Positions 11,017 through 64,000 of a stretch of 64,000 nt of DNA are shown piece after piece. Numbering within the stretch: the first letter of the stretch is position 1; the number at the start of each line of letters is the position of its first letter. Position numbers and translations under genes: made by a program. Source of the stretch: Lepidodermella squamata (lineage: Eukaryota; Animalia; Gastrotricha); NCBI GenBank assembly GCA_047495785.1, contig JBLDXI010000029.1:2046001-2110000 (forward strand), in the 5' to 3' direction. Under the pieces are notes generated by a model. That model saw only the letters and a program-made list of their open reading frames with translations. It was not told the origin of the DNA and made no database searches.

Positions 11017-12091
11017 ATAGTCGAGCTCACTACACGCCTAAAGAGTTTATTCAATTAAAGAGTTGATATTCTTGAATAATTTGTGAAGAAGCGCACTATT
11101 TTTTATAAACCGGACCAGACGCTGGTCCGGACCGGACCGGCTTACAATAAAGCGGACTTTCATTTGGTCGGACTAAATCGCCTGGCATGGATAAAGTCCG
11201 GCGTCCGGCTGAACGCAAAAATACGGTACCATCGCTACACGATAAACAATAACGTATCGCGCCCTAGAGCTGCCATAAAATTGCGCTATATCTAGCTAAT
11301 ATAACCGACAGCATTCTCCGCTACAAGGGTTTTTGGAGGAGCATCCCAGATCCCAGCTCTGCTGAAACTCGAAGCAGTCCGGAAATTGTCACCAAATTCA
11401 ATTTCATCCAACTAGGACTTTATTCCAGGGATGTTTCTTTATATGCATCTCCGCATTATCAAAAAACAGGAATTGAAAGGTTGTATGCATACCTATCATT
11501 GAAATTCCTCTTACAAAGTTTCGAGTCAAATTCCGCGCGCTCCTCCACGCATCAGTTGACTTTTTCCAGAAAGCGGTTGGCAAAACTGCAAAGTGGTTTT
11601 AAAATAACACACCGGACTAGTTTTGGATAAACAACTATTTGCAGAATCAGGCATAAAATCATCGTGCACCTAGTGAATGCTACTTGATGCAATCGATTTA
11701 CAGTGTAAACTTGATTCTTGTACACCGAATACACGATAAATAATTCTCATATTGTCAGTCATCCGCACATTTATAATGCACATATTTATATTGAAGCGCA
11801 TATTTATGATGCGCTTTGAATTCTTTGAGTTCTTCGGTTCCGCGGAACAACCCATGAAACGTGTGCGGCAGTTACATGCATCCGCTTTTATCGCTAATGT
11901 ATGTTTTCTCATAACCAGGAAGCTTTCATGCGCTAAGATGCGCGGAACTGCTGAAAGACAGAGTTTTTTGCTAGCTCAGACGTCCACGCGGAAAACATAA
12001 GCCCTTGGGGGCGGCATGGCGAGAATATTTAAACTTGGAATCCTTTTTTAAATCATTCATCTTCGGTGAGATTTTCCGTGGACATCCCAGG

Positions 12092-14428: not shown

Positions 14429-15408
14429 AGCGCACACTCGGCTAAACTGCTTGCATTGTCAAATAAACTGTACTTGTGGAATTTATGTTGTGCAGCTATC
14501 TAAAAGTGAACAAAACACAGTCATCGCCCGCGTTACTTAGATAAAAGTTGTAATTACCATTCTGCCCTTCTCATTAATTGTAATGATGCTTCTATTGCGA
14601 AACTTCATCATACATATTCAACGTATCGATTCGGAAGTTGTCAGTTTTTGAAATATAATAAAAAAAGTATAGTGAAGGCATAGAGAGCTAAATACCTTAC
14701 GGGCCAAATACGCCTATTTGCGTGTAGGAAATTTTGCAGAAAATGGCCGTAATTTGCGTGGGCGAAATTGTTGCTTTTTCGCGATTGTCTTCTTCATCAT
14801 CTGAATGCCTGAAAATCTGGACTACACATGTGATAAAATCAATTAAAACCTGAATAACCAAAATTGCAAGTCGATATAGGCTCGGTAAATTTAAAATTTA
14901 ACCCTCTTTGAGTTTTTTTCAAATGAGCAAAATATGAATATTATTTCTCGGTGTCTTCTCTGAGTATATGTTAATGATCAGAGCCTTCTTCTTTTATGGC
15001 TGGAGGCTGGATCAAAATATTGGCAAAGATGGACAAGGAAATTCAACTTTCCTTTCACTTATCCGCGCGAAAATGAGATTTACAAAAACATGTTTCACCT
15101 TTATGAATTGAGCAAGTTCTACGTTCGTCTTCATAAAATTGTATTAACCTTTCAGTTGAACACATAGTTTTGATCGTTTGCCCTTGCGGTCTTATGTCCC
15201 TTTTCAATTTAATTCAAAATATGAGTAAATAACCACTGTATTTTCCAAGTTATTAAATTTATTATCATCATTATATTGTGAAAGTGTGCATTGATTGCAT
15301 CTTGATCACATAATAATTTTCTTATTTCCTAACAAAGTTCTTTTGAGAATTGCAATATCCGCTACAGCTTGCTACTGATTTCAGGCTTCTTCATGTCTCG
15401 TTGTTCGC

Positions 15409-16661
15409 TTAGGCGGTCTTGACGGTGACGGGGCGGGTGTTGTTGATGAGCTGGCTGTGCTGGGCGGTGAAGCGGCCGTTGTAGCCCATCGAGGGCAGCA
15501 TGCCGGCGAAAGCGGTCTGCTGCAGCAGCTGCGACATGACCGGCGACTTGGCAATCTCCTCGGTGGTCATCTTCGGCAGCTCGCACTCGACAACAAGGTA
15601 GCCCTCGGCGGTCTGGTACGACTTGAGCTCAACCTTCGACAGGTCAATCTTGGCAAGAGTCTGCAAAAATTCGAACAATTATGATTGCATTTCGAGAAAT
15701 CGAAGAGAGAAATTACCTCGGGCAGGACGAACTTGCGCGAGTACTTGCGGCTGATCTGGTGCTCCTTGCCGTCCTTGGCCTCGTGGGCAGCCTCGATGAC
15801 GACGGCGCGCTCAGTCTTGTTCAGGGTGACGGTGATCTCCTCCGGCTTGTAGCTCTTCAGGGCGAAGACGAGGCACAGCTGGCGGTTGCCCTCGATGTCG
15901 ACGACGCGGATCGGGTTCGACAGGGTGTACAGCTCGACCTCCGACGACGGGCGGAAGGCGACGTTGGACAGCTTGTCGTGGTGGGACCAGGTGTTGTCGA
16001 TGGCGGAGAACAGTTCGGGGCGGGGGGTGGTCATCCACGAGGCCGGGTTGGCGCCGGTCCACTGGCGGGCGAAGACCTGGGCGGCGATGCGCTGGCAGAT
16101 GTCGGCGAACAGCTGCTGGCCGATGCGGGCGGCCTGCTCGGTCTCGACCGGGCCGCAGCCGAGGCGCTGGGCGACGGTGGCGCCGAGACGGGCACCCTGC
16201 TCGGCGGCGCGGATGACGCAGCGACGGCTGGTGATCTCAGCGTCGACCGGGGCGAGGGCGAGCTCGACGGCGATCTCGGCGCAGATCTCAGCACCCCACT
16301 GGGCGGCGATCGGCTGGACGAGCTGCGGCTGGGCCATCGGGGCCATGCGGGCGGCGACGATGTGGGCCAGCTGGGCGCCGGTCTCGGCTCCGTAGGCGCG
16401 GGCAATCTCAACCGGGCGCTCGATGGGGCTCGAGTACTGGGTCGGGACGCGGGCGAACGAGGTCGGCATGACCGGGCTGGCGTTGATCATCGACGGGGCC
16501 GGGGCGACGAAGGTGTTGTTGATGAGGCTGCGCTCGTTGCTCAGGGTCGAGTAGATGTCGACCTTGTTGCGGAGCAGGCTCTCGACGTTGACCGGGCTGG
16601 CGTAGCCGGCGATCGGGGCGGCGGTCGGGTAGGTCGGTTGGAAGGTGTAGGTGGCGGCCAT
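15409..16661 (-). CDS. Large small heat-shock (alpha-crystallin domain) protein, about 398 aa, 2 exons (16661-15717, 15660-15409)
   Basis: Alpha-crystallin signature FALKSYKPEEITV...VIEAAHE...ISRKYSRKFVLPE|TLAKIDLSKVELKSYQTAEGYLVVE, joined by a 56-nt GT-AG intron. Very high GC3. Confidence 0.85.
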
Positions 16662-16969
16662 TTTGATTTCGAGTGAAGAAAAACACGTAAAGCGAATTAA
16701 AGAGAAGATGAAGCTTTGAAATTGCAAGCGAGAGCGATTGATGATTGAAACGTAGTAAAATCGACCTTTTTAAACCATCAAAGCACGCGACTTAATTGCC
16801 ACTTCACATAGAAATAGATGAAGCACGCGTTTTAGGACACGCTTCTACTCAACCTGGCGTCCTCGTGGAAAGGTTTCTGCTAAAAATACATTTTTGAAAC
16901 AATTTCATTTTTTATTTTCTTTCAGAAAATATTTGGAAATTTCAAGTTCGAATATCGTTAATCGCGGGT

Positions 16970-18747
16970 TCAATAATTTTGGAGTAGAAATAGTACAACA
17001 ATTGCCAATAAATGATTCTTCGAATTAGCAGCTGAGTTTGAGCTGTAGTCTCCAATCGAACACTGGGGATTGTCTGCGTTGATGCCATTCAGCTGCAAGC
17101 CGTTGCATTCACTGCCGCAGCACGAACACACGTTTTCGACAGGTTCACTATCCGTTGGCGAAATATAGCTGAATTCGCAATTATTGCTCGTGAAGCTCGA
17201 AGCGCCCCACTCGTACTGCGCAACGCCATTAACAATTCGCATTGATTTCTAAACAAATCAATTTTTATTTTTCATTAAATATATTTTTATTTATAATTTA
17301 ACAAATTAATTTTTAAATTTTTATTTTGAATTAATTCAATTTTTTTTAATAATTTTCTATAAATTTTAGTTTTTTATATCTCAAATTATAAAAAACTCAC
17401 GTAGCATTGCTCCAGCTCTGTTACAGGCAATGGTGGTGAAATTAATTGATTTAACATTGGACTATTGCCCTATAAAAATTCAAAAATAAATAAATAGGTG
17501 TATTATACTAAAATATTCGAATTTCTTTCTACCTTGTGAATGAAGCATCGTTTTTCCGAGAGTTCAGGCGGCCGCGAGCAAGCATCGTCGAGCTGTTCAT
17601 CGTTGCATAAATCGCCGCAGCAAGTGCAAATTGCGTACCGAATCGCATCTCGATCATACGTTGTAATAGCCGCTGATTCGCCGCAATTTATTGCCACTTG
17701 CGACGGCCGGCGGTATTCCATGCAGCCCCATTGGTACCAGGCGGCCTTGTGCCGGTTCGGATTGACGTTCGAAATTCGCATTTTCTACAAGTACAAATAC
17801 AGCAAAATTTGAAATTAATGTAAAAAAATAAAAAAAGCAATATGAAGGAATTATAAATAACATTATTTTTTCGATCCAATTAACTGAATCCAGAACCAGA
17901 CCCGCCGAATAAACAAAATTTTGCAGAATTTTACGATCAATTTTTATTAATTCAAATAATTACAGAAATATTTCAAATAATATATAAAATAAGTATCCCA
18001 ATGTTTCATATTAAAATAATTCCAGGATTAATATCTAGTAAATAGGGATTAAAATACAGCGTGTCTCATTCGGAATACTACACAGAAAGGGTTTGGAAAC
18101 TCCAATTGAGAGACCACATCTCATGACCAGAAAAATTTTAGAAAAATTCAAGAAATCACTAGAATAGTAATCGAGTATGTCATTTGTTAATGGGATTTAA
18201 AAAATCCGGAGAAATTTGATCCAAACTGGTAAATACCGAAAATTACCGAACCAGTTACCATCGGGATTTTCCGGGTTTTCTCCGGAAATTTTTTTATTAT
18301 TCGATTAGTTGAATTTTCAACAAAGTTACCAAATTAAAAAATAGTCGCTCAACGACTAGGACAGCCTACAGGGTCTTACTTTGGGCAGAACCAAATTTTA
18401 AATTTTTAAACCCGTTTTTCGAAACTTTCATTGATAGGGTGAATATTCTTAAAAATTTCTAAATAATTCTAGATTTCAAGATGATCTATATATATATATT
18501 TATACTCGATATTCAGAATTTTCTGATGTGAGAGACCGAAAAATAATAAAAAACTAACATAGCAGACTGCTTTCGGCGTCTCACAGGTGATTTGCTCAGC
18601 CTCTTCTGGAATCGTGCTGTGGGGGCTCTGCGCCTCGAAGCATTCAAGCGCGATATTTGAGGTGACCGCGACCGCGAAAATGAGAAAAATTACGGCAAAA
18701 ATTTGAATTCGCCACGGCGCAATTCGGCCGACTTTAAAACGCTTCAT
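16970..18747 (-). CDS. GPI-anchored Ly6/three-finger (LU/quiver-like) protein with two domains; exons 18747-18559, 17784-17533, 17469-17401, 17248-16970
   Basis: Signal peptide then LECF, two CCxxxxCN motifs (CCGDLCN, CCGSECN) and a C-terminal hydrophobic tail. All junctions are phase-0 GT-AG and stay in frame. Confidence 0.75.
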
Positions 18748-20548: not shown

Positions 20549-22816
20549 ATGCTAATTCCTAATTGTTTGTCTTTGATCTTGTTCTGCTCCATTCTCATTG
20601 TCTCGGTTGAAGACGCTGAAGCTCGAAAGCCGTACCGCTTGCGAACACTATTCCACGTTCCGTTGTTTCTAAATGTGGGAGATTTCAGACACTGTCGATG
20701 GGCATTCCAGACAGCTTACGACTTCGCAAATAATCGCTCTGATATTCTGCCAGACTATCACCTCGAATTTGAACATCGCGATGAAGGGCCTCAAAGTATG
20801 CTGGCAACGTCCACAAGCATAAACTTCATGCGTTCGATGATGGACTCGACAGAGCCTGGTTTATATCTTGCCCCAGTAACAGTGGGCGTGTCTTATACCC
20901 CCGGTTGTAAGAGTTGGGGCAGAGCTGCGTCTTATATGGACATGGTAATGATAGCAGCGAATTGCATCTCGCCCAGTCAAGCGAACCGCCGAGACTTATA
21001 CCCTAACCTGTGGCGTATCAAAGCTTCAACCAAGTTGACCATAATGGCTAGACTCAGCTTTATCAAACAGCTTACCTCATGGAAGAAAGCTGCAGTTCTC
21101 TTTCCGGTCAGTGAGAACTCCTTTGGATTGGAGGCAGCCACTTACACAATAGCAATGAATATTCAATTCGGCTTCGGAATTCAGACTATTGAAGCGAGTT
21201 CAGACTTCAACGATGATTTGATGCAGTCGTTCATCGAAAAGGACATCCGCATTTTTTTATTTGAAAATGGCGATGCCTTCATCATGGTACCTTTCCTGTG
21301 TCAGGCCTTCAAAAACGGGATAAAGGGTGAAAGATACATGTTCCTCTCGTTCATCTACGCGTACATGGATCCCAACGTTTTTCCAGCCTATTTGTATCCG
21401 AAGGACTGTAACATTTCTATCTACAAAGAACAAGCTGAACGAGTGTTGTATTTTGGCGCTTATTCGCAACTTCCAATTGCTAATGACGGGATAAGCAAAG
21501 ACTACCTAGGAAACACATTGTCTGAATTCGATACCTTCTTCAAATCGAAGTATCCAGTCGATATGAAAACGGCTGATTATCCTCTGCGATACTTTTGCTA
21601 CGATTCTGCTTTGCATTCTATCGTCACGCTGGCTGCGTCTGAGAAGCTTTTAAACAGCCGGAACTTGACTCTCAGGAACTTTAAGGATGATCCTCGAAAC
21701 GTGATGCTCGCTGTAAATGAAAGTATTGGCAATGTAAGGTACAGAAACATGCAGCACGGCTATTTTCACTATTCTGCGAGAATGGAGATGGACTATGAGG
21801 CACAGCTGGTCGCAACCTGGTCTCAGCAGACCGGACTTCGGGCAAGGTATGCCATATCTCTAGATGACAGTGCCACAACAGGGAACGATACTTCGCTTTT
21901 CAAAATACGAGTGGTTGCGCCTTTCGCGCCAAATTATCTACCGAAAGATGCTGCTGTCGAGGAATACGTTGATATCGGGATCCCTTATTCTGTTTTTAGC
22001 ATCTTAACAGCAACAGCCTGCATGGTCGTAATTTGCCAAATCAGTGGCATTTCCTATACATTTTCCTCTGAAAAGAAAAATCTCAAAATCAAAATAGACG
22101 ACTTTCTTGGGATGCTGGGTTTTCTCATTCTGGCATGTGGCTCAATGCTTCTCGCAACTCCGACAAATTTGCGTACCAATGCTGTTTGTCAAACAACAAT
22201 CTTCGCCGCAACATTGGGGTTGTCTCTGCTATACAGCATCATAGTCTTTCGCTTCTGGTCCGCTTTCAAAATTTTGCGGCAAAATGCGGCTCGCCTACGA
22301 CGGGCTCCGAATCTTGTCAAAGAAGAAGCATCCTTCCCAATCAGGGCCCTGCTGTTTGTCCTACTCAACTTCATCATTGCAATATCATGGGCTGTATCTG
22401 ATCCCTACCATTTCGCTCTCGCCAAGCCGGAAAATTCCAGGTACTACGTCGCTGATATCGATACTTACGTAGAGATGTATTCTATCACCTGCGTATCGAA
22501 TTTTACGGGTCAATGGTTGGCTGCTCTTCTGGCATTGCATCTCGCCCTACTTGGGATAGGTGTAATTTACGTTGTGAAACTCAAAGGCAATCGATACTTG
22601 CGGTATTATCCGTTCGTGAAGCGATTAGCTGTGGCTATTGCTGCATCGTCAACTTTATTCCTGGCTCTTACTGCCGTGGTCTTTATGCTGAAATCGACTA
22701 GCGCGCAGAATATTGCAGTAGCAGTTGGATTGCAGATTCAGTCAGGTATAATCGCCGCTTTGCTGTATGTCAAAGTTGGGAACGGATCTGCGGGTGGAGC
22801 AAAGAGACGTAGATAG
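20549..22816 (+). CDS. Class C GPCR, subfamily A, shortened C-tail
   Basis: 755 aa, collinear with paralogs. Diverges after KVGNGS and stops early. Confidence 0.85.
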   Translation: MLIPNCLSLILFCSILIVSVEDAEARKPYRLRTLFHVPLFLNVGDFRHCRWAFQTAYDFANNRSDILPDYHLEFEHRDEGPQSMLATSTSINFMRSMMDSTEPGLYLAPVTVGVSYTPGCKSWGRAASYMDMVMIAANCISPSQANRRDLYPNLWRIKASTKLTIMARLSFIKQLTSWKKAAVLFPVSENSFGLEAATYTIAMNIQFGFGIQTIEASSDFNDDLMQSFIEKDIRIFLFENGDAFIMVPFLCQAFKNGIKGERYMFLSFIYAYMDPNVFPAYLYPKDCNISIYKEQAERVLYFGAYSQLPIANDGISKDYLGNTLSEFDTFFKSKYPVDMKTADYPLRYFCYDSALHSIVTLAASEKLLNSRNLTLRNFKDDPRNVMLAVNESIGNVRYRNMQHGYFHYSARMEMDYEAQLVATWSQQTGLRARYAISLDDSATTGNDTSLFKIRVVAPFAPNYLPKDAAVEEYVDIGIPYSVFSILTATACMVVICQISGISYTFSSEKKNLKIKIDDFLGMLGFLILACGSMLLATPTNLRTNAVCQTTIFAATLGLSLLYSIIVFRFWSAFKILRQNAARLRRAPNLVKEEASFPIRALLFVLLNFIIAISWAVSDPYHFALAKPENSRYYVADIDTYVEMYSITCVSNFTGQWLAALLALHLALLGIGVIYVVKLKGNRYLRYYPFVKRLAVAIAASSTLFLALTAVVFMLKSTSAQNIAVAVGLQIQSGIIAALLYVKVGNGSAGGAKRRR

Positions 22817-29002: not shown

Positions 29003-30876
29003 AAACATTTCCGAAAGGAAGGCGTTGATATTCGGCTTTCTTCAATGATAATTTATGCCGACGTCTGAAATTGAAATAAAGTTAACAGGTTTAACTCTTT
29101 TATTCAAATGTGCTTTTCACTGCTCACAATTTTGAGATCGTCATTTCGTTTATACCAATATGAATATGAATATGCAATTTGGGGTGTTAACACGGTTGCT
29201 CTCGTCTCCGATGACATTGCCAGCTGAGAAAAAAACTAAAAAATGCTACGCAAATATGATTAGGTATTCGGATTAATCAGCGTCATCATTACCATAGCTC
29301 GTACCAGGTACAATGTGACTATCTGGCTTAATATTTTTATCGCACCTCATGATGGACTTTGTATTGCGTAACACACAAGCAGGGCGTAGAAATAAGTAGT
29401 CTATTGCCTGATACGCTGAAATCCGCATGCACTACCGGCATCGCGACACTGCGACCTGATTAATCTGCCCACAAGAGCTATGGATTCATTCGCGGCAAAT
29501 CGTGATTCACTTTAGCCTGCATATAAAGGCTCAATCAGCTCCAATGAAAGTAGTGGGGCTCTTGTCATTATCTTACAAATCTTCGTCTCGCCTTTGGTTA
29601 ACATCTTCAATAAGTTTCATAGGCCACAATGAAGTTACTGACATTTATTTCTCTCGTTTTGGCAACGGCTCACGCTGATCTGAAGTCATCATGGGCAAGC
29701 GCAGGGGGCGACCAAGCCCACACTGGCTACAAGGCTGAGTCTGTAGTAGCATATAACGGCATTGAGCTTATACGCAAATTCGACGTGGTTCTCGATTCGA
29801 ATTTCGCGTCTAACGACCAAATCGTGGCCTACAACGGAACGATTTTCCAAATCGACGACCAGGGCAGGCTTTACATGTACGACGCAGAGAGTGGCAATCG
29901 GTTGAAGGTTGTAGCTGTAGCTGGTTCTTTTGACTCGGCGTTCAAATGCGGCCAGCCAACGATAGCAGAAATAGACAATTCAGCTGCTCTGTACGTTCGC
30001 TGCGAGTCTTTAACGCCTGAGATGAAAACTCGAGTTCAATTGATTTCTGTCAATCTGGGCAAGGATAACTTTGGAGATTTGCAGACGTTCGAGTTTGAGA
30101 CGCAAAGCTACTCGCCCTCCAATACCTTCGTCGGCGCTGTTAGCTCAGGCACAGGCTACTTTTACTCGGTTTCCTATGCAAAAAACGTAATTGGATTCTT
30201 CCCAATAGGCAAGGCCATAGGGAATGCTACGATAGAGGTAACAATTCCGACTATTGATGACTCCGAAATCTTCGCAGTTTCATTAAGTGCCGATTCACGA
30301 CTATTTGTATCCCATGCCTTTTCTATGACTCAAGTTAACGCTATAACTGGAAAAATTATTGGCACAGCATTTGTTGATAAAACCTCGATAAAAATCTGGT
30401 TCACCCCGATGTTAGCCAATAATCAAGCTGCTATTGTCCCACAAGTGACCTGCCCCACATCTGGATGTTGGGTCAATATCTTCTACTTTGATATCACTCT
30501 ATATTTTAGTAGCGCCAATTTGCGCCAGTGTGCGCCACCACTCAGCATGTGATACGCGCATACTCGAGCTTGTGCCAACATAACAGCGCGTTTCCTTACC
30601 GTGGGATATAACGCACACATTCACGGGTGGTTTAAAGTTAAGCTCCGTGCTATTTCAAACATTGAATAAACGATTTTGACGAAAGCCGCATACTTCGCCA
30701 CGCTATCGATTCCCGAAGAATGGACTGAAAAATGTGTAAAATAATACGGCTTTCCAGGGTGCCATCGATGAAACCCGCGAAGATGTGAGTGCCAGGAGTA
30801 TATTAACCCAGAAATTTTGACAATTCAGAGACTAATAAACAATTAAAACAGCATTTCCGCCTTAATTTCCGAAGCT

Positions 30877-31833
30877 ATGCTGCCGATTGTAACAGTAACA
30901 TTGGTTGTAGTCATTTGCGCGGGCACTGCAGCGGTACACGCCGAGCCGCCTCAGTTAGCTTCTGGCGTTGCGGCTTCAATTGGCCGTCAATTTTACCAGC
31001 AACTGGCTTCAAACAACGCAACCTCCATGGTTGAATTCGTCAATTCGTTGCCGTCGCTGTGCTCCTCAAGCGAGACCGCCGACGATTTGCCTGTTCGAAT
31101 GATGGCCGCCTACTACGACGCCAACAAGTTGGTGCAACCTGAATGCAACGCCGCTACGTTCGACAGCTGCATGGCGTCTATTGGCGGCGAAACACTCAAC
31201 CGATGGCTGGAATATCGCTACCAGGCGCAGTATGTATGCAATTATATTTCTCATCAAAATCAGTCGTTAATCGACCAACTCGACTCTTTACTTGTCAATT
31301 CGCGATATTACGAGCAAATTAAGGTGGCGATTCAAAATTTTTTTATTCGATGCGCTATTTCTCAAATTTTTTGGCTACCTCAGATGGAAAATGAGTTCAA
31401 TATTGCCCGTGGATTCGTTTATGTATTCCTTATTACAACCGGTCTTCTTTTTGCTTGTATCTGCTCACGAGTTTTGGTACTTTTAGCGTTGCAGGTGACA
31501 TTGGGTGAAATCCTTATTTCCGTTTCGTTCCTACTTACTGACGACATCGTCAATGATAACATTTCGCCGCATTTGATGTGTCTGATTTTTCGTTACATTA
31601 TAACGATTCGATTTCTCATCTACAATTGCCCCAAAAACTCTGAAATAGGAAAAATGCTGGTTCTTCTAAAATGCTGCGCAAAACAAATTGCTATTAACTC
31701 ACGCATGCGAAAAGCGCCCGTTTTCGACGAGGAAGCTCTTATACTGCCCTCATTGGAAAGCCAGGAAAAGATTCCACCGGCGCGCCGCAATACCCGCAGT
31801 TCGAACCCTTCCAATCGCAACTCTGCTGCGTAA
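30877..31833 (+). CDS. Element ORF1: signal peptide, Cys-containing ectodomain, C-terminal hydrophobic segments; function unknown
   Basis: 318 aa ORF with leader MLPIVTVTLVVVICAGTAAVHA, hydrophobic GFVYVFLITTGLLFACIC...SVSFLL and LMCLIFRYIITIRFLIY segments, and a basic tail. Confidence 0.65.
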   Translation: MLPIVTVTLVVVICAGTAAVHAEPPQLASGVAASIGRQFYQQLASNNATSMVEFVNSLPSLCSSSETADDLPVRMMAAYYDANKLVQPECNAATFDSCMASIGGETLNRWLEYRYQAQYVCNYISHQNQSLIDQLDSLLVNSRYYEQIKVAIQNFFIRCAISQIFWLPQMENEFNIARGFVYVFLITTGLLFACICSRVLVLLALQVTLGEILISVSFLLTDDIVNDNISPHLMCLIFRYIITIRFLIYNCPKNSEIGKMLVLLKCCAKQIAINSRMRKAPVFDEEALILPSLESQEKIPPARRNTRSSNPSNRNSAA

Positions 31834-32263
31834 ATCTTCTGCTATTTGCGTGCTAATTTAGAATTCTTCGCGAATATGTTTTTTAGCTGTTCTTCGGTTT
31901 TCCTTATCGCTTTTAATCGGCGCACTATAGGAACTCAATTTTTTATCTTTGCGTGAATAGTGTTAATTAAAGCTATGAAACTCGCCGCATCTTTTCTCTT
32001 TATATTACTCAAAAGTTTAATTGTTTTTTAATCTTTCGATTATTCCTGTTTTCTTGTCAACAAATTTTCATTATGCTGAATGCAAATTTTGCGCAGAAAG
32101 CCAATTTTTTTACATTATATACTTGTATGATAAGTTCGCAAATAAACTGATTTTGTTTCGATTTTTTCGAAGAGAAATATTTGGTAATGGAAGTAAAAAT
32201 CCCATAATAACCTATATTGATTATTTTTTGTCATTTAGATTTTTTACTCAATAATCTGAAGCT

Positions 32264-34694
32264 ATGGCATTTTTTGTTCCCACTGCCGCAATCGAACAGC
32301 GTATTCAAGCTGAGATGGTCAGGAGGATTCCCTCGAACTTGGTCGATTCAATGATCGCCGTGACCATGGTTCCGCCAACTATCGCGCCTCCGAACTTTGT
32401 CTCGTCTCCGTACCAACCGTTACCTCAGAGCCTTCCGTATCAGCCATCTTTTCCGTATCTTCTCTCGCCTCCAGGGTGTTCACAATCGCGCTCTGCTATT
32501 TGCGTCTCGCTGACCCCGCCTCAGTGGGCGCATAATCAAGCTGCCGTCTACAACTATCAGCTTCAGCACTTCAATTCCCCGTTTTCGCAAATCGCTCCAC
32601 TACCGTCGTTATCGAAGCCGGATTCAGTGAAAAAATCCAGTCGCAAGGAGAAGATCTGCCCTTTCTGTCACACCCAGCGTAACAGCAATCACTTCCGCCG
32701 CCATGTTCGCGCTTGCAAGGCCGCAACTGCGGGAAATGTATCCTTACAGGATAGGCAAAAAGCTGCGACGATGAGCATCACCCCCGAAGCCCGTGATCGC
32801 GAACTGTTTATCGACAAGGTTACGAAAAAAGTGGCGTGCTTCGTCACGGAGCGAATTTCAACGGAATCTTCAGTTGCCGGAACTTCAGCTGCTGGAACTG
32901 CTACTGCTGCCAGCCCGGCCGTCATTTTCGAGAAACCTTCGGCGGGTTATAAACTACAGCGATGCCCTGTTTATTTTAAGGGGCTTCTTAGCACGTTTCA
33001 AGCCGGCAAGCGATACAATTGGTTGCCGAAGAAGAAAGTTAGCACCAAGTTGGCGAGGAAAACCCGTTTAGGGACAGCGATGTTGCTGTCGGGCTGTACT
33101 ACGCTCGAGCAGGCAGGGTCCTACGAATATTGGGACACCTGCTTCCATTCAACAACCATTCTCGAGCGTGTCAAGCAGCCGAAGAAATCGGCGAAAAACA
33201 AGGCGAAATACAAAAGCCGGAGAAGGTTCAGCGCCGGATGCAGTATTCGCGCCTGAAAGTATTGCAAGAATTTGTTAATTGGCTGGTTGCGAATCAACAC
33301 GTCCCGGAGGACTCGAAGCTGACGAGCCTGTTGAAGGAGGTTACCACAGACGTGCTCATCGACACAAAGCGCGAAGCCGGGTTAAAGAAGACTGCTCGCG
33401 CCAAATTCGCCCATGACATGGAACTGCCCATGCAGTATTATCGTCACCTCGATGAAATTATCCAGAGTCGCCCCAAAAAGCTGAATATCTATGGTCTGAA
33501 AGTGGCGCGTATTGCCGTCGCTGCAAATAGTCACACTGGCTGTCGGTAAGCCACTTTTTGTTCTTTTTTCAATCAATAACCTGAAATATTAGGAATTTTC
33601 TGGGATTAATCTTTTTCATTTTTTTCGTATGCGGAGAAGTTTTGATTATCAGGCTTAGTTAGATGAGAAAAAGGTAAATTAGGCTGAATTTAGATGAATA
33701 ATCCGTGGCGTAACTATTATTATTTTGCTCGGGCAATATTATAGCCTTTCAAATTTAGGGATGAACGGCCAACAAATCGGGTTTAAAACCTCATAAATAC
33801 GCAAAATTAGGTCGCAGAACTCGAAATTCGGAGTTGGGTAAAATACATTTTGAGGTGGGTTGGATTTGCCGGGAATTATCCGCAGCGATACAAACTTATA
33901 TTTCCCAAAAATTAATAAGAAACCCATCCATATCTTACGAGCCAATTCTCTTGATGTAAACCGCCAGGAGGTTGTTATTTCATGAAAATATTCATCTTCA
34001 TTGAATTTGTTTTTTTTTCAGGGCTTCCGGGATGGTCCAGATGAAATTGAAGGAGTGGAGAGATCGGAGCATCGATGCGGATGGCGAGGGCTGGGTCGCC
34101 GTTCACGTGAAGAAAATGAAAAACGCCGCGAGCTGTTTCCCTTTCGTCACGTTCGACCCGGCTACGGCGGTTAAAATCGAGAAGTACATCGAGAACGACC
34201 GACCGAATCCTGCGACCTATCGCGATTCGAGATACGTTTTTTTAACGCAAAAGGGCGGAAGGCTGGACGACTCGACGCTGAGTTATTGGTCGAACCTCGG
34301 ATGGAGCTCATTCAAGGAAAAATTCCAAGCCTGCTTCAACCGCCGGCTCACTAAAACGTTCCAACTTACGACCCAGCGGCGCGCCATCAACACCACCACG
34401 CGTTCAGAGAAAAATCCAGACCAGCCGCCCCAGGCCAAGGTGAATCAGGCGTTGGTCCAATCTGAACCGACGGGCGAGCAGGTTTACACGCTGAGCGCTT
34501 CATTATCAGAGGCGATGGGTGTTGCCAAATGGGCCTACAGCAAGAACGCTAGCCGCCTGGACCCGGCGAACCCTGATGTCAAACCGTTCGCCTATCAACC
34601 GGTGAAAGCGGTGCCAGTAGCGGGCGGAATCGATAAAATGGAGTGTGATGAAAGTTCGAGTGAAGACAGCGATTCAGAAGCCGATGAAGAATGA
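32264..34694 (+). CDS. Element tyrosine recombinase with N-terminal Pro-rich region and C2HC finger; one frameshift near 33130-33250, intron 33546-34021
   Basis: CPFC-x11-H-x3-C finger. Splicing gives TGCR|ASGMVQM (box I Arg), then VHVKKMKN (Lys), YVFLTQKGGRL, LTTQRR, ALVQSEPTGEQVY (Tyr) and an acidic tail. Confidence 0.75.
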
Positions 34695-35658
34695 TAATTT
34701 TCGTTTGTATTTTATGCGCACTAAATTTTCAGCTTGGAAAAAATCCCGATCTTCGTTGTTAAACCTAGCTCTCGTTAGGCCTGTTTGTTAGGTTTTTTAT
34801 TTCCGAACTTTTAATGCTTGATAAAACTTCTTTTTATTGTCTTTTTTTATTGTCCCACTGGAGAAAAAGACTGCGACAAAAAGATGCTTCTTTTCGTGAA
34901 ATTGTTGCTTCGGAAATGTTGATTTGGACATGAGACGTCGGGGCTCGAATAAAACTGTAGCGACTGATTTTTGCGTTATTTTTAATGAGGTTCAAAGGTC
35001 ATGGTGGCAAAAAATAGCCTCATAAGCAGCGATCAGCAAAAATCCCATTCACAAAAAGCACGTGTTTTCGCGCGCTGTTTCTTAAAATCAAGCGATTAAA
35101 ATCAAATTATTCTATTTAAAAAAATAATAATAATTTGCCACAATTTTAAGCGTTTTTTTTGACGGCGCGTGATTTTTTGCGTTATTCCGGCACGTGAGGC
35201 TGAGATTTTTCTATGGGGATATAAGAGCCCCGGCGTCCTAGTACGTCTTGTGGTTGTGGATTCGTGTTGCCCGGTTCATGACAAAAATGGACACATTGTT
35301 GTAGCTAAATTGTTGGAAATCTAGGTATTGTGATCGCTCGCCGGCTTGATTTATTTAAAAAGCGTCGATTTTTTTCTGAGTGCTCGGAGTTGTTTGCCGC
35401 GTTTTATATAATTTTTTATCAAGTTTTTGATATTGAATGGCTCTTTTTGATTTTTTTTATCATCGCGTTTGTGTTATTTTCCGCGTTTGTTCCGCATCGT
35501 TTGCCTCTATCGCCAGTCTCACTGTAACCACGGTATGCCCTTTTCCCCGTTTATGCCTAGAAGTAGTCACGGTTGTATCTTATCATAGGTATCTTCAATA
35601 AATAACTTGAGATCGGCGTGACTTGCAGCTGATATTATCTAATTATGGTCATCCGTCT

Positions 35659-35712
35659 AAATAAAACGTTGAAATCGCGGTGATGAAATAAAACGTTGAA
35701 ATCGCGGTGATG
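35659..35712. repeat. 27-bp tandem duplication inside the YR element
   Basis: AAATAAAACGTTGAAATCGCGGTGATG x2, exact. Confidence 0.9.
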
Positions 35713-35984
35713 ATTACGAGTAATATTCGCGTTGATAGTGTTAAATGACAGCAGATCATATAGCTGATTGGGAGATACGAGACCTGGTTGGTGAATATGG
35801 CCGTAAATTGCGATGACACGCAACGTAAAACGTGTGAAATGCGCTCTAGTGAGCACAGTGAGCGCAACAGCTCGATACACTTCAGTGATTGGCGCAGATA
35901 AACGATGAATATAAAGGCAGTCGACAACACTTATTTTTCATTCGCTGTTTCAACTTTTATTTCAATCACTAAATTTTACCATCA

Positions 35985-36470
35985 ATGCCTTCGTGGTCCG
36001 CCTTCTACGGTCACCGACGTGCGTGTCAACTTCTCCGCTCGCTGTGCTCAATCGGCGAAACGACGGCTTCTTCGACTACAACTTCGACCGCTGCTACTAC
36101 AACAACTACACGCGCGCTGTCTTCAACCTCGCTCGATGCCCTCAAATCGCCGCAGCGTTACTATCAAGACATGCAGGCGGCTTACACGGTTTTCGTCGTC
36201 GTGGTCGCGGTCTTGGCGCTGACCATGGTTGTCTCGCTTGCTGTTGGCTTGGGCTATCTATTTCGAACGGCCATCTCCAAGCGCTGCTGCCGTAGAGCGC
36301 CGATACGGCGACGCCTGAAAAAGCTGCCTTCAACACCCAGTGGCGGCAGCGACACCGCTTTCTCACGTGACTACCCACGCCGCGGTCGTTCCTGTCTAAA
36401 ACCCAACGTTGCCGACGTCGAAGTGCATCAAACCGACAACGTAGGTCTCGAGGACCTGTTCGGCGCCTAA
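35985..36470 (+). CDS. Element ORF3: single-pass membrane protein with a Thr/Ser-rich stalk
   Basis: TTASSTTTSTAATTTTT stalk, TM VFVVVVAVLALTMVVSLAVGLGYLF, juxtamembrane KRCCRR, AATAAA at 36570. The 5' end is uncertain. Confidence 0.6.
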   Translation: MPSWSAFYGHRRACQLLRSLCSIGETTASSTTTSTAATTTTTRALSSTSLDALKSPQRYYQDMQAAYTVFVVVVAVLALTMVVSLAVGLGYLFRTAISKRCCRRAPIRRRLKKLPSTPSGGSDTAFSRDYPRRGRSCLKPNVADVEVHQTDNVGLEDLFGA

Positions 36471-37857
36471 CCGCGATGTTAACCGCCTTCCGGCTTCTAA
36501 CCGGCCCTTTTCAGGGCCACAAGTTGTTGCAACAGTGTTTGATATAAAGCGATGAAAGTCTTAATTTGAAATAAAACAGTACGTTCACTTTTATTTGTTG
36601 TTCAATTGGCCTATTGTGTTAGCTTAAACCCGTGTTTGCGCATTGCGTAACAGCCTGCTGAGTGAGTGCGCCATTTTGCGCCACTAAAATATCACAGATG
36701 GCAAGAGGATGTCTGTCAAAAACGTTTACCTTTTGAGCCAGGAACCGGCTGATGCTTCTAGCATGGCAACGGATGGAAATTCAATCTTCGGGCTGGATAG
36801 TGTGAACTCTTATATAATTGTTAAGGGCATACCCACTGATGCAGGGTCGACATTCTCTTGTGACACTTTTGGCCAGGGTACTAGAAGTTCGCGGCCTTAC
36901 ACCGTCGTCACGGATAGCTTCATCTTCTCCGAGGCTTGCAAAGGGCTAACACTGATGGACAAGAAAACTGGCAAATTACTTGATAAAAGGCACGAATCTG
37001 TGTCCGGGTTGTCTTATTATAACAATGCTGTCTATTTCCGGTATTTTGATGAGCAAACTAAGAAGCAAGCAATTGGATCTCTCGGCTTGCAAGCAGCCAA
37101 ATCTATTAGCTCGAGGTTCATTGGAAGTTTCGGAATAACGTCTCTATGTGCCATGCTCGCAGCTTCCAGTGCCTTTTCAATGAAAACTTATTTTGAATAA
37201 ATTGTAATTCCAAATTTCTACCTGATTCTTCCCTCGAGCGCGAATTGTGCATCACATTTGATTTGATATAAGCTGGAGCTGTCGAGCGCCGTGTTTATCA
37301 TTGGTCACCCTGTGGCCTATATTTACGTGAATCTTTCTGTGATTCACTGCCTATTTTTGTAGCTTGAATTAGTGGTTTAAAGAGATGACTGATGACACAA
37401 TAAACGATTCTTACTAATTAAAAAATCGACCTCTCAATGAGCTGTTCTAATTTTTTCTTAGAGATCTCAATATTTGTTTCGGCTCAAATAGAAAGTAAAT
37501 GTCTCCACGTTCCTGGAAAGTTAACTGATCGCTACTACGTTGTTAACGCGCTCTAAGATTCGGAATTCTTGCATATGACAGTTGTGCCTTATTAAATGTC
37601 GCTAAAACAATCGATTTACCGATATGACAATCCTAATGAGGATTTCAATGGGCAGCAGCTCATTAGCAGTTACAATTAGCTCATTTATATCAAACTAACG
37701 CGCAATTCTGATAAACGCTAAATTATCACAGCAATGACACGTGCCCTTTTCGAACAATGGTTCTGTCGCTATATATTCCGGAAAAGATACAGAGAAGAAG
37801 CATCAATCAAGCGAAATTCGAACTATCTATTCTCACTTTTCAATTTAAAGCGAAAAA

Positions 37858-39410: not shown

Positions 39411-41744
39411 TCATCGAGTCTGATTTCTGAAGGCGATCACCTTGCGACGTGCGTCAAATCTACTCAGCATTGGCGTCGACGGTAGATGAGGTACTGCTTC
39501 ACCCACAGCATCCGCTCCGTTCCCAACATTGATGTACAGCAAAGCGGCGACAAGGCCTGATTGAATCTGCAATCCCACTGCAACTGCAATATTCTGCCCG
39601 CTTGTCGATTTCAGCATAAAGACCACGGCAGTAAGAGCCAGGAACAAAGTTGATGAAACAGCAATAGCCACAGCTAATCGCTTCACGAACGGATAATACG
39701 GCAAGTATCGATTGCCCCTGAGTTTCACAACGTAAATAACACCCAGCCCAAGAACAGCAAGGTTCAACACAAGTAGAGTTGCCACCCAATGACCCGTAAA
39801 GGTTGATGCGCAGATGATCGAATACAGTTCAATATAAGTATCAATTTCCGCGACGTAGGACCTGGAATTTTCCGGTTTGGTCAGCGCTGAGTGGTAAGAA
39901 TCAGATATTGCCCAAGAGATGACAATTATCAAGTTCAGTAGAAAAAATATGAAGACCCTGGTTAGTATTGAGAAGTTCTCTTTGAGACGATCCGGGACAC
40001 GACTTTGACGTGCCTCATTTTTCCGCAATATTTTGAAAACAGATCTCAACCGGAAAACCATCGTGCTGTATAGCAGAGACAGCCCCAATACTACGGCGAA
40101 AACTGTTGTTTCGCAAACAGCATTGGTACGCAAATTTGTTGGGGTTGCGAGAAGAATTGAGCCACATGCCAAAAGGAGAAAACTAAGAATTACGGGGAAA
40201 TCATTGATTTTTCTTCCGAGATTCTTCTTATCAGACAAAAGAATGTAGAAAATACGACTGATTTGGCTTACAACTACTAAGCAAGCTGTTGTCGTCAAGA
40301 AGATAAAAACTGAAACGGGCACCCCGACATCAACGTACTCTTCGAGGGCTGCATCTTTTGGTAGATAATTTGGGGCGAAAGGTGCAAGAACTCGTATTTT
40401 GAATAGTGAAGTGTCGTTACTTGCTGTGGCATTGTCATCCAGAGATATGACATACCCTGGCCGAAGACCGGTCTGCTGAGACCAGGTTGCGACCAGTTGA
40501 GCTTCATAGTCCATCTCCATTCTTGCAGAATAATGAAAGAAGCCGTGCTGCACGTTTCTGTACCTTACATTGCCAATGCTTTGATTAACAGCTAGCATCA
40601 CGTTTCGAGGATCTTCCTTAAAGTTCCTGAGAGTCGAGTTCCGGCTGTTTAAAAGCTTCTCGGACTCAGCCAGCGTGACAATGGAATGCAGAGCAAAATC
40701 ATAGCATGTGAATCGCAGAGGATAATCAGCCATTTTCATATCGACTGGATACTTCGACTTGAAGAAAGCATCGAACTCAGATAGGGTGTTTCCTAGGTAG
40801 TCTTTGCTTATCCCGTCATTAGCAAACGTAAGTTGAGTAAGGGCGCCGAAATACAAAACCCTTTTGACTTGTTCTTTGAAGATCGATGTGTTACAGTTTT
40901 TCGGGTACAAAAAGGCTGGCACAACATTGGGATCCATGTAGGCAGTGATGAATGTAATGAACATATACTTTTCACCCTTGATCCCACTTTTGTAGGCCTG
41001 GCACAGGAAAGGGATCATAACTAACGGATCGGAATTTTCAAATGAAAATATTCGAATGTCTTTTTTGATGAATGATTGCATCAAATCGTCGTTGAAATCT
41101 AAACTCGCCTCAATCGTCTGAACTCTCAGACCAAATTGGTTATTTGTAGCTGCTGTGTAACTTGCGACATCTAACCCATTGTTATTTTCAGTGGCCGCAA
41201 ACAAAACTGCAGTTTTCTTCCACGGGGTGAATTGTTTGATAAAGCTGAGTCTAGCCATTATCGTCAGCTGAGTTGAAGCCCTTGTACGCCATAGGTTTGG
41301 GTATAGGTCTCGTCGGTTCACTAGATTCGGCGACTGGCAAGCCCAAGCAGCGACTACCATATTCATATGAGACGCAACTTGCCCCCAGCTCTTACAGCCT
41401 GATGTAGCAGTCACACCCACTGTTATTGGGGATAGGTATAGCCCAGGCTCTGTCGAGTCCATCATCGATCGCATGAAGTTAATGCTTGTCGACGTTGCCA
41501 GCGTACTCTGAAGTCCTTCGTCACGATGTTCGAATTCGAGGTGGTAGTCGGGCAGAATATCGGAGCGATTGTTCGCGAAGTCGTAGGCTGTTTGGAAGGC
41601 CCATCGACAGTGTCTGAAATCTCCCACGTTTAGAAACAAAGGGACGTGGAACAGAGTTCGCAAGCGGTACGGCTTTCTACATTCAGCAGCCTGTTCGAGC
41701 ACGAAAGAGGTGAGGAGAATCGAAAATATAATCGCAAATGCCAT
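39411..41744 (-). CDS. Class C GPCR, subfamily A, intronless
   Basis: 777 aa. The first ~55 mature residues are identical to 20549-22816. Confidence 0.85.
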   Translation of the reverse strand: MAFAIIFSILLTSFVLEQAAECRKPYRLRTLFHVPLFLNVGDFRHCRWAFQTAYDFANNRSDILPDYHLEFEHRDEGLQSTLATSTSINFMRSMMDSTEPGLYLSPITVGVTATSGCKSWGQVASHMNMVVAAWACQSPNLVNRRDLYPNLWRTRASTQLTIMARLSFIKQFTPWKKTAVLFAATENNNGLDVASYTAATNNQFGLRVQTIEASLDFNDDLMQSFIKKDIRIFSFENSDPLVMIPFLCQAYKSGIKGEKYMFITFITAYMDPNVVPAFLYPKNCNTSIFKEQVKRVLYFGALTQLTFANDGISKDYLGNTLSEFDAFFKSKYPVDMKMADYPLRFTCYDFALHSIVTLAESEKLLNSRNSTLRNFKEDPRNVMLAVNQSIGNVRYRNVQHGFFHYSARMEMDYEAQLVATWSQQTGLRPGYVISLDDNATASNDTSLFKIRVLAPFAPNYLPKDAALEEYVDVGVPVSVFIFLTTTACLVVVSQISRIFYILLSDKKNLGRKINDFPVILSFLLLACGSILLATPTNLRTNAVCETTVFAVVLGLSLLYSTMVFRLRSVFKILRKNEARQSRVPDRLKENFSILTRVFIFFLLNLIIVISWAISDSYHSALTKPENSRSYVAEIDTYIELYSIICASTFTGHWVATLLVLNLAVLGLGVIYVVKLRGNRYLPYYPFVKRLAVAIAVSSTLFLALTAVVFMLKSTSGQNIAVAVGLQIQSGLVAALLYINVGNGADAVGEAVPHLPSTPMLSRFDARRKVIAFRNQTR

Positions 41745-44829: not shown

Positions 44830-45061
44830 AAGATCATACTTCTTGGGATCATTACTTTATTAAGTTTTGCCCCAACGTCAGCCTCATCTGACGACAAACC
44901 CAAACCGCGATGACGAGGCGTGGTGACTGGCCCTGAGCGCGAACTTGGCCGCACTTGACTGGCTATCATTAGCCGGTCTCGTCGGCCGTTGATGAACGTT
45001 CCGGGTTGGTGGCTCCTTAACTGGGGCCACTTCCGGAGGGGTCTGTCGCTTTCAGAGCGGC
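44830..45061 (+). ncRNA. U3: U3 snoRNA
   Basis: 5' AAGATCATACTTCTTGGGATCATT (boxes A' and A), box C' GATGACGA, box B GAGCGCGA, box C TTGATGA, box D-like CAGA, terminal stem CCGC/GCGG; about 232 nt. Confidence 0.85.
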
Positions 45062-63083: not shown

Positions 63084-64000
63084 TTAAAAGGCACTGAAAA
63101 CTGCGAGAATAGCACACAGAGAGGCGATTCCGAAACTTCCAATTGACCTGGAGCTGTTAGATGTAGCTGCTTGCAGGCCGAGAGATCCGATCGCTTGCTT
63201 CAGATTTGGTTGATCAAGATACCGGAAATAGACAGCATTGTTATAATAAGACAACCCAGACACCGATTCGTGTTTTTTGTCAAGTAACTTGCCAGTTTTT
63301 CTGTCCATCAGCGTTAGCCCTCTGCAAGCCTCGGAGAATATGAAGCTATCCGTGACCACGGTGTAAGGCCGCGAACTTCTAGCACCCTGGCCCATGGTGT
63401 CACAGGAGAATTCAGCCACTCCCTTTCCATTGGCAACGTTCAACACAATTATTTTAGAGTTCACACTATCCATCGCGTAGATTAAATTTCCATCCGTGGC
63501 AATGCTAGAAACATCAGCCGTTTCCTTGCTCAAGATGTAAGTATTAGCGACAGCCATCTTCTTGCCTTTGGTGATATCAATACCGAGGAACTTGACTTGA
63601 CATCCCGATGCGGGGCAGGCTACAGTAGGGACAATAGCTCGATTTTTGGCTAAGATCGGTGCGAACCATATCGAGCTCGCAACACTCGGGTCATCAAATG
63701 TTATCGTACCCAGAATTTCGCCAGTTACGGCGTCAATTTGAGTAAGGGAGAAGGCATGGGATACAAACAGCCGTGAATCGTCGCTTAGGGAAATTGCATA
63801 GATTTCGAAGTCGCCAAGTTCTACTTCAATCGTCGCGTTGCCGATTGTCTTGCCTATCGGGAAGAACCCAATTACGTTTCTTGAATAGAAAAGCGAGTAC
63901 CAAAAGCCCGTATCCGAGCCTACAGCGCCGACGAAGGCGTTCGAGGGCAAGTAGCTAAACGTGTCAAACTGGAATGTCTCCACGCCTCCAAAATTATCCT
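63084..64000 (-). CDS. Third PQQ-like beta-propeller paralog (5' end outside the window)
   Basis: Collinear with 58855-60216; the frame is open to the window edge. Confidence 0.8.
   Translation of the reverse strand, partial: DNFGGVETFQFDTFSYLPSNAFVGAVGSDTGFWYSLFYSRNVIGFFPIGKTIGNATIEVELGDFEIYAISLSDDSRLFVSHAFSLTQIDAVTGEILGTITFDDPSVASSIWFAPILAKNRAIVPTVACPASGCQVKFLGIDITKGKKMAVANTYILSKETADVSSIATDGNLIYAMDSVNSKIIVLNVANGKGVAEFSCDTMGQGARSSRPYTVVTDSFIFSEACRGLTLMDRKTGKLLDKKHESVSGLSYYNNAVYFRYLDQPNLKQAIGSLGLQAATSNSSRSIGSFGIASLCAILAVFSAF

Follow-up and report, generated by a model that had tools for sequence, protein, structure and literature searches.

Cryptons (Goodwin et al. 2003; Kojima and Jurka 2011, PMC3212892) are DNA transposons of eukaryotes, and a tyrosine recombinase is all that they encode; CryptonF-1_cRei is active (PMC9977147). 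In the model for these elements, recombination takes place between a short sequence at the end of the element and a target nearly identical to it, and elements have been seen to excise cleanly (PMC3212892; PMC9977147); the terminal direct repeat is 4-6 bp (PMC3212892). The name Crypton is used below in the broad sense of recent authors (PMC13465315). Eukaryotic DNA transposons with a tyrosine recombinase are rare and poorly understood, and the Crypton recombination site has so far mostly been reduced to its 4-6 bp terminal repeat. Here, a 6198-bp element was analysed in 64,000 nucleotides of the gastrotrich Lepidodermella squamata (GenBank assembly GCA_047495785.1, contig JBLDXI010000029.1, positions 2,046,001 to 2,110,000 of the forward strand). 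This whole stretch is called the window, and all coordinates refer to it unless a relative is named.

The element is probably an integrated copy of a eukaryotic tyrosine-recombinase DNA transposon, Crypton-like in mechanism, from a small unnamed family with up to three genes. The family genes encode a very divergent zinc-finger tyrosine recombinase, a multi-pass membrane glycoprotein (ORF-A, where ORF stands for open reading frame) and a small single-pass membrane protein rich in Ser/Thr (ORF-C). Related elements from metagenome contigs are designated by L numbers.

Insertion of the element into a host gene

Two copies of ATATCAC, at 30491-30497 and 36689-36695, were spaced 6198 bp apart, and the identity stopped at both of their edges. 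The sequence at the left junction was TTTGATATCAC|TCTATATTTTAGTAGCGCC, and that at the right junction was GCGCCACTAAAATATCAC|AGATGGCAAG. The features of the insertion were as follows.

29629-30497, + strand: host gene 5' part, with a signal peptide, encoding a PQQ_2-like repeat protein and terminating with the left ATATCAC (ORF and paralog alignment)
30491-30497, unstranded: left direct repeat ATATCAC, the stretch of identity between target and element, inside which the crossover must fall; the empty sites of the paralogs have one copy
30498-36695, + strand: inserted element, 6198 bp including one repeat copy; its deletion restores the host ORF exactly
36689-36695, unstranded: right direct repeat ATATCAC, made up of 4 nt from the end of the left arm and 3 nt from the start of the spacer; the geometry in L011 is alike
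36696-37200, + strand: host gene 3' part, encoding a hydrophobic C-terminus (ORF and paralog alignment)
Predicted empty allele at the locus: TTTGATATCACAGATGG

After removal of 30498-36695, a single ORF of 457 amino acids (aa) was obtained from position 29629, with a signal-peptide-like N-terminus and a hydrophobic C-terminus. The restored protein aligned without gaps across the junction with two paralogs in the window (FYFDITDGKRMSV vs LGIDITKGKKMAV). The paralog at 58855-60216(-) shared 72% identity with the restored protein over 455 residues (E 0), and the paralog at 63084-63983(-) shared 68% aa identity with the interrupted gene. The DNA of both paralogs was uninterrupted at this place, TTGATATCAC(A/C)AAAGGCAAG. 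Since each of them has a single repeat copy at the matching position, the paralogs are natural empty-site controls. A precise insertion that splits a host gene, as given in the preliminary description of this DNA, was therefore confirmed by the two ATATCAC copies, by the restored ORF and by the gapless alignment. The possibility that the element is an intron of the host gene was set aside, the borders being without usable splice sites.

The host gene had also been called a beta-propeller gene. A weak PQQ_2 signal agrees with that name, whose sole basis is sub-threshold matches in the paralogs (E 2.8e-4 and 0.021). The interrupted gene family encodes a secreted protein with a hydrophobic C-terminus and this weak PQQ_2-like signal.

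Recombination site at the joined ends

When the ends of the element were joined, they gave ACTAAAATAT-CACTCT-ATATTTTAGT, in which the arms were perfect over 10 bp. With the arms extended to 16 nt each (TGCGCCACTAAAATAT | CACTCT | ATATTTTAGTAGCGCC), 14/16 positions matched, while the maximum in 500 shuffles was 13. The arm-spacer-arm organisation of lox/dif type, previously proposed for the joined ends, was thus supported. The features of the site were as follows.

30495-30500, unstranded: spacer CACTCT, 6 bp, as at the left junction (joined-end analysis)
30501-30516, unstranded: right inverted arm ATATTTTAGTAGCGCC (inverted repeat, 14/16 arm match)
30512-30537, + strand: three 10-bp-phased GCGCCA hexamers in the left subterminal region; phased hexamers occur at the same place in L001, L010 and L011
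36668-36683, + strand: two 10-bp-phased GCGCCA hexamers in the right subterminal region, oriented like those on the left
36677-36692, unstranded: left inverted arm TGCGCCACTAAAATAT (inverted repeat, joined-end analysis)
Predicted circle junction of the joined ends: ACTAAAATATCACTCTATATTTTAGT

The pattern GCGCCA-N4-GCGCCA was confined to the element ends in the 64-kb window, with 3 matches (0.27 expected; 0/100 shuffles reached 3). The hexamers are presumed to be binding sites of the recombinase or its zinc finger.

Compared with the element arm ACTAAAATAT, the left half-site of the host, ACTTTGATAT, agreed at 7/10 positions; for the right half-site of the host and its element arm, the agreement was 2/10. 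Only CAC was common to the target spacer and the element spacer, with 3 of 6 positions differing. The earlier statement that the empty site shares only ATAT and half of the spacer was correct for the spacer and too narrow for the left half-site, where more than ATAT is shared.

The same organisation was found in a second, independent element. L011 is complete, is 2681 bp long and carries AAAATTCAA twice as a terminal direct repeat of 9 bp. Its joined ends, TATGGCGATAAAAATT | CAATAT | AATTTTTAGCGCCATA, had inverted arms matching at 15/16 positions, flanked by phased repeats of the GCGCCATACA type. In both elements, the terminal repeat joined the inner part of the left arm to the three bases with which the spacer starts (AAAATT+CAA in L011 and ATAT+CAC in the window). 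In the window element and in L011 alike, the joined ends as inferred show inverted arms around a spacer of the 6-8 bp length that is usual in lox/dif-type sites.

Recombinase gene and predicted fold

All three genes of the element were on the + strand. The recombinase gene, at 32264-34694, was the middle one and contained one 476-nt intron and one frame change. It consisted of the following parts.

32264-33545, + strand: first coding block, with an N-terminal CCHC zinc finger (CPFC..H..H..C) and the core-binding domain, ending in box I (HTGCR) (three-frame translation, alignment A1)
33546-34021, + strand: spliceosomal intron, 476 nt, GTAAG...TTTTTTTTTCAG, which splits the Arg codon of box I
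34022-34694, + strand: catalytic exon, with Lys (KMKN), Arg (TQRRAINT), Gln at His/Trp III (LVQSE) and Tyr (GEQVYTL) (phmmer, alignment A1)

The ORF of 330 aa that starts at 32264 and contains the CCHC zinc finger corresponded to the recombinase N-terminus of full-length relatives in A1; it may have been counted as a separate protein in the preliminary description. Zinc-finger profile hits on this N-terminal region were weak. An intron was located at the identical recombinase codon in three elements, with a length of 476 nt in the window, about 70 nt in L001 and 58 nt in L010.

Where the window gene changes frame, L001 and L010 had a continuous ORF with a shorter linker. A 62-nt intron at 33170-33231 was considered as the cause and rejected: the coding sequence of the relatives aligned on both sides within it (ERVKQPKK vs QRIKSSKK; KVQRRMQY vs PVARRMQY), and for this reason a frame change within 33191-33219 is more likely. 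The frame change may be a sequencing error. Because of it, this copy as sequenced has no full-length recombinase, and it may be non-autonomous and reliant on other copies.

In A1, the conserved Arg residues were those of the motifs xRPSG, which reads TGCR|ASG in the window, and QRxxxQT. The MKN motif supplied the Lys and LGH the His, which is replaced by Gln in the window, L001 and L010; the Tyr followed about 10 residues later. Of the active-site residues, R, K, R and Y were conserved and the first His was variable, with Gln at His/Trp III and the window ORF frame-shifted. The recombinase of this copy is a predicted one, and its catalytic activity is unproven.

No ORF of the element had a significant Pfam hit, and no reverse transcriptase, DDE transposase, polymerase or capsid was found in the Pfam scans of all element ORFs; the relatives were likewise without reverse transcriptase, DDE transposase or polymerase. 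An insert without reverse transcriptase, polymerase or capsid had been described before, and the scan agreed and added the DDE transposase to what is missing. DUF3504 and DUF3435 gave no hit in the 20 sequences of A1, and DUF3504 was absent from these and from the window pieces even at E up to 10. GCR1_C gave no hit in the Pfam scans of the window pieces and the 20 A1 sequences. The PDB sequence search with the recombinase pieces and the family profile returned weak zinc-finger matches only.

The structure of the full-length relative P0004 was predicted by AlphaFold2 with A1, and the predicted local distance difference test score (pLDDT) was mostly >80 over residues 120-470. In the Foldseek comparison of this model with the PDB, the top 50 matches were all tyrosine recombinases, aligned over about 350 columns and both domains. 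Tn1549 Int was the leader (E 5.8e-4; 6emy, 6emz and 6en0), followed by Cre, XerH, XerA, XerD, lambda Int and TelA. The best matches in the viral library were, where they had a name, phage integrases or other tyrosine recombinases; giant-virus proteins, mostly of algal viruses and mostly uncharacterised, were among them, and none was closer. These model-based results support a tyrosine-recombinase fold for the family, and they answer the structure-prediction check that had been proposed for it. The presence of a tyrosine recombinase gene was thus upheld by the A1 motifs and the P0004 fold; as to its form, it is not one clean ORF, being broken by the intron and the frame change.

Membrane-protein genes

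The other two genes of the element were located on either side of the recombinase gene.

30877-31833, + strand: ORF-A, 318 aa; a signal peptide is followed by an ectodomain of about 150 aa that contains Cys, by two hydrophobic segments (176-221 and 233-251) and by a basic tail (ORF, hydropathy)
35985-36470, + strand: ORF-C, 161 aa, with the conserved N-terminus SW.A.YG.RRAC..RSLCS, a Ser/Thr-rich stretch, one transmembrane helix at 61-95 and a basic tail

Homologs of ORF-A were found in L001 (56% identity), L010/P0022 (41-42%), L005, L006, L013 and L015. The N-terminus of ORF-C was 68% identical to that of the L001 ORF-C over 22 aa, and proteins of ORF-C build occupied the equivalent position in L005/L002, L014 and L016. 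Homologs of ORF-A or ORF-C flanked the recombinase in L001, L010, L005/L002, L013, L006/7 and L015/16. Among the distant subfamilies, whose recombinases are about 20-35% identical, an ORF-A-like gene was upstream of the recombinase in L005/L002 and L013, and an ORF-C-like gene was downstream in L005/L002 and L014. In L006/L007 and L015/L016, the order was recombinase, ORF-A-like gene, ORF-C-like gene. Altogether, at least five recombinase subfamilies contained ORF-A homologs; their identity was 20-56%, and two gene orders occurred. Alignment of the close (A3) and distant (A4) ORF-A sets by hhalign gave a probability of 98% (E 2.3e-13, 160 columns).

P0022 (41%) was the only database homolog of ORF-A, and it led to L010. 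The profile search with all ORF-A sequences returned four unnamed metagenome proteins only. No host-gene family was found for ORF-A, the profile and single-sequence searches of 5.8 billion proteins giving element contigs only.

Because they are conserved with the recombinase across deeply diverged subfamilies, ORF-A and ORF-C are, judged from sequence comparison, core genes of the family and not passengers. The term cargo, applied to them in the preliminary description, was therefore dropped. With low confidence, the membrane proteins are proposed to serve the spread or maintenance of the element itself rather than the host.

The cytoplasmic tails of ORF-A and ORF-C shared a basic PRRS(T/A)R or PRR motif (window 31780-31833 and 36360-36400; L001 1400-1434 and 3930-3969), a hint that the two may have a partner or sorting signal in common. 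Between the recombinase gene and ORF-C lies a non-coding spacer of 1.3 kb, in which a perfect 27-bp tandem duplication occupies 35659-35712; the corresponding spacer in L001 was only about 170 bp.

Relatives of the element

When 1.84 billion representative proteins were searched exhaustively by phmmer with the catalytic exon, 14 relatives were found. All were unnamed ORFs of short metagenome contigs (ENA or Logan) that came from a handful of samples. With the A1 profile, only the query itself was returned from the set of 5.8 billion proteins. No relative was found in the scans of JGI metagenomes and IMG/VR, and exact-protein look-ups of the window ORFs gave no match. The recombinase was the sole gene common to every family element recovered, and it was the only family gene in L011.

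L001 was the closest relative, with 49% identity in the catalytic exon and a gene order collinear with the window element; L010 also had the gene order of the window element. The left ends of L001 and L010 had the same layout as that of the window (TCA(C/T), 14 nt and three phased hexamers), with ambiguous borders. Two tentative border models were considered for L001. In the first (TATTT/TATTT, 3902 bp), removal of the element fuses the minus-strand ORFs 106-235 and 4137-4535 in frame, giving at least 176 aa. The second (TCAYCAT, 3916 bp) keeps the 26-nt hexamer spacing of the window and fits the left ends of other subfamilies, shows no significant palindrome and conflicts with the first.

CAATAT, followed by an A/T-rich arm and GC-rich repeats, was present at the left ends of L005, L006-8 and L011. 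In L006, L007 and L008, three distinct left flanks converged on one end sequence, so this subfamily occupies several insertion sites.

A pogo-like DDE_1 gene, a mariner-like ORF and an AAA_11 helicase gene were located beside relatives (L002 5765-6277(-), L014 1672-2286(-) and L004 3784-4539(+)), and the metagenome hosts look repeat-rich. The recombinase of L002 (2830-4080) was shorter than that of L005 (1309-2880) and had a different N-terminus, with homology beginning inside the gene at L002:2847; it is a copy that has been truncated or rearranged.

Proposed mechanism

In the proposed mechanism, the element would excise as a circle, and the joined ends would form the recombination site, with inverted arms of about 15 bp around a 6-bp spacer. 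Recombinase monomers would bind to both arms, and the 10-bp-phased GC-rich hexamers beside the arms could be accessory binding sites. The chromosomal partner would be a sequence resembling the left arm and the first 1-3 spacer bases, with one good half-site and these bases as the requirement. We infer that the first strand exchange takes place at the start of the spacer, where identity would be required, and that the remaining spacer and the right half-site may be heterologous, as for integrases of the Tn916 or CTnDOT type. Bacterial conjugative transposons of the Tn916/Tn1549 and CTnDOT types likewise start from a circle, and their targets share little of the spacer sequence. The spacers at the two junctions, CACTCT on the left and CACAGA on the right, would reflect inheritance of one daughter duplex. 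Only end states were seen, and integration from a circle is the most economical reading of them.

Several observations weigh against a Crypton-like transposon. Cryptons are described as having no terminal inverted repeats, whereas inverted arms are present here. The window recombinase passes from frame 1 to frame 0 between 33191 and 33219; its subfamily has Gln at His/Trp III, and within the family the first box II His is variable (A1). The recombinase family had no significant Pfam match, the best being Phage_integrase at E 0.013 in 1/20 members. The fold was obtained from the relative P0004 and not from the window protein, and the Foldseek E-values were modest. The membrane proteins had no outside homologs in the protein searches, and the structure model of ORF-A was poor (pLDDT 52.8). 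The inferred junction palindrome of L001, whose borders are ambiguous, was 10/16 and not significant. Within the 64 kb, no circle junction, no empty allele of the same locus and no second copy were seen.

Alternative explanations

It is conceivable, if rather doubtful, that the elements form a distinct superfamily with its own membrane-protein pair and that these proteins act in transmission between cells or hosts, in exclusion or in maintenance. If this were true, the element would in function be less like a plain transposon than like a transferable element that integrates or a virus-like agent with an envelope only.

The element is unlikely to be the integrated form of a small virus-like or episomal element that exists mainly as a circle, with membrane proteins for envelope or transfer and a recombinase for integration and excision only. 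Such an origin would be in line with the retention of the membrane genes beside the recombinase in subfamilies about 30% identical, with the basic PRR(S/x)xR motif in both tails and with a family known from few environmental metagenome assemblies only. However, no recognisable capsid, replication or packaging gene was found in the Pfam scans, and no relative in the IMG/VR and JGI metagenome scans. The genes contain spliceosomal introns, the base composition is that of the surrounding DNA, and L011, a complete element, has no family gene besides the recombinase. In addition, the relatives lie among other transposons, like ordinary genomic repeats.

Very little probability was given to a classical single-gene Crypton that carries two host surface-protein genes as passengers. 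ORF-A homologs accompany at least five recombinase subfamilies in the two gene orders, at 20-56% identity, and the searches of 5.8 billion proteins placed ORF-A relatives on element contigs only. This outweighs what the recombinase-only L011 shows, namely that the membrane genes are dispensable for a complete end-to-end element, and the extra C48 peptidase gene that some Cryptons bear (PMC3212892). Cargo status for the membrane genes was rejected on their conservation across subfamilies.

A cut-and-paste transposon of the DDE type, mobilised in trans, for which ATATCAC would be a 7-bp target-site duplication next to terminal inverted repeats and the recombinase-like gene incidental, would explain the inverted termini, the flanking direct repeat and the pogo-like and mariner-like genes adjoining the relatives, but was rejected as scarcely credible: the element encodes no DDE transposase (Pfam); the right-end arm overlaps 4 nt of ATATCAC and the left-end arm begins 3 nt past the repeat, and because the arms are not flush with it the duplication is partly element sequence; L011 shows an equal overlap with a repeat of another length (9 bp); the recombinase is common to all recovered elements and is the sole family gene of L011; and the neighbouring DDE genes are outside the element ends.

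Genomic context of the window

The window was eukaryotic nuclear DNA, as indicated by the spliceosomal intron, the U6 and U3 genes, the class C G-protein-coupled receptors (GPCRs) and a glycoside hydrolase family 31 (GH31) gene with a trefoil domain. Six long, apparently intronless class C GPCR ORFs (ANF_receptor and 7tm_3) formed a local cluster around the element. The context features were as follows.

376-2835, + strand: class C GPCR ORF
3223-5580, - strand: class C GPCR ORF
7995-9959, + strand: class C GPCR ORF
12005-14428, + strand: class C GPCR ORF
20549-22816, + strand: class C GPCR ORF
39411-41744, - strand: class C GPCR ORF
44830-45061, + strand: U3 small nucleolar RNA gene (99.6 bits)
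57288-57393, - strand: U6 small nuclear RNA gene (115.4 bits)

At 15000-17000, there was a GC-rich island (0.59 vs about 0.42 around it), in which long ORFs overlap on the two strands and HSP20 gave a weak hit. The stretches 45430-46515, 48364-48864 and 54082-54732 contained a trefoil domain, a GH31 C-terminal domain and, further on, a sulfotransferase fragment; the trefoil and GH31 C-terminal domains are probably exons of one alpha-glucosidase gene.

Significance of the family

The window element and L011, which are independent, give a full arm-spacer-arm site with accessory repeats, and a common target rule applies to both: a match to one arm plus the first spacer bases. Because the site and the target rule are defined, the mechanism is directly testable by a plasmid recombination assay. 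The family thereby offers a compact pair of eukaryotic recombinase and site.

The membrane genes were the unexpected part. They showed deep co-conservation and had no relatives outside the elements, unlike passenger genes, and they raise the question of why a transposon of 3-6 kb needs surface proteins. The family was nearly invisible to annotation, with no significant Pfam match and 14 unnamed relatives in 1.84 billion representative proteins.

Comparison with known systems

DIRS, Ngaro and VIPER elements are also eukaryotic mobile elements with a tyrosine recombinase. They contain reverse transcriptase, RNase H and split direct or inverted long repeats, and none of these was present here.

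Starships (PMC10104507) resemble the element as eukaryotic tyrosine-recombinase elements with further genes, short direct repeats and sometimes inverted termini, and a circular intermediate has been reported for them (bioRxiv 10.64898/2026.09.21.753150). However, Starships are fungal, measure tens to hundreds of kb and carry variable cargo, with a DUF3435 Captain at the 5' end, whereas the elements described here are 2.7-6.2 kb with a fixed gene set and no DUF3435, and in the window element the recombinase gene is the middle one.

Integrases of the Tn916/Tn1549 and CTnDOT types provided the best fold match, Tn1549 Int on circular-intermediate DNA, and the target of the window element differed at 3/6 spacer positions in a similar way. 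The element differs from these systems in its eukaryotic, intron-bearing gene and in having no conjugation genes, and at about 15% identity there was no sequence-level relationship.

With Cre/loxP, XerCD/dif and XerH/difH, the element shares two inverted arms and an asymmetric 6-bp spacer, and Cre, XerH, XerA and XerD were among the top structural matches. Those systems use two near-identical full sites, whereas here the partner is one half-site with 3 spacer bases; unlike the simple Cre/Xer sites, the phased hexamers recall arm-type or accessory sites.

The closest likeness was to the Cryptons. As in these, a tyrosine recombinase was the sole recognisable enzyme, there was no reverse transcriptase, and the insertion was precise, with a short terminal direct repeat that matches the target exactly (Cryptons, 4-6 bp; window, 7 bp; L011, 9 bp). 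A circle and site-specific recombination have been proposed for Cryptons as well, and some of them have a second gene. By the broad definition, the element agrees with Cryptons in its tyrosine recombinase, in the absence of reverse transcriptase, DDE transposase and polymerase, in its precise target-identical repeats and in its location in a eukaryotic nuclear genome; it departs from that definition by its terminal inverted repeats (14/16 in the window and 15/16 in L011). It is unlike described Cryptons in its inverted arms of about 15 bp with phased subterminal hexamers, in its recombinase, which has an N-terminal CCHC zinc finger and matches neither DUF3504 (CryptonA) nor any other Pfam model, and in its two membrane-protein genes conserved across the family. 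The DUF3504 match that defines CryptonA, known from animals and Glomeromycota, was absent. CryptonF, CryptonS and CryptonI are defined by phylogenetic clustering, with a GCR1_C domain in CryptonF and a conserved C-terminal region in CryptonS; the comparison with these three covered the Pfam scans, in which GCR1_C gave no hit.

No description of such a gene set was found in the literature searches. The element had been suggested to represent an undescribed class. This view was retained as far as the inverted arms, the recombinase lineage and the membrane genes are concerned, and was narrowed in that the element is a Crypton-type element in the broad sense. It looks like an undescribed branch of the Crypton-type transposons, with four departures from the described Crypton groups: the arms and accessory repeats, a zinc-finger recombinase lineage without DUF3504, direct repeats of 7-9 bp and two membrane-protein genes.

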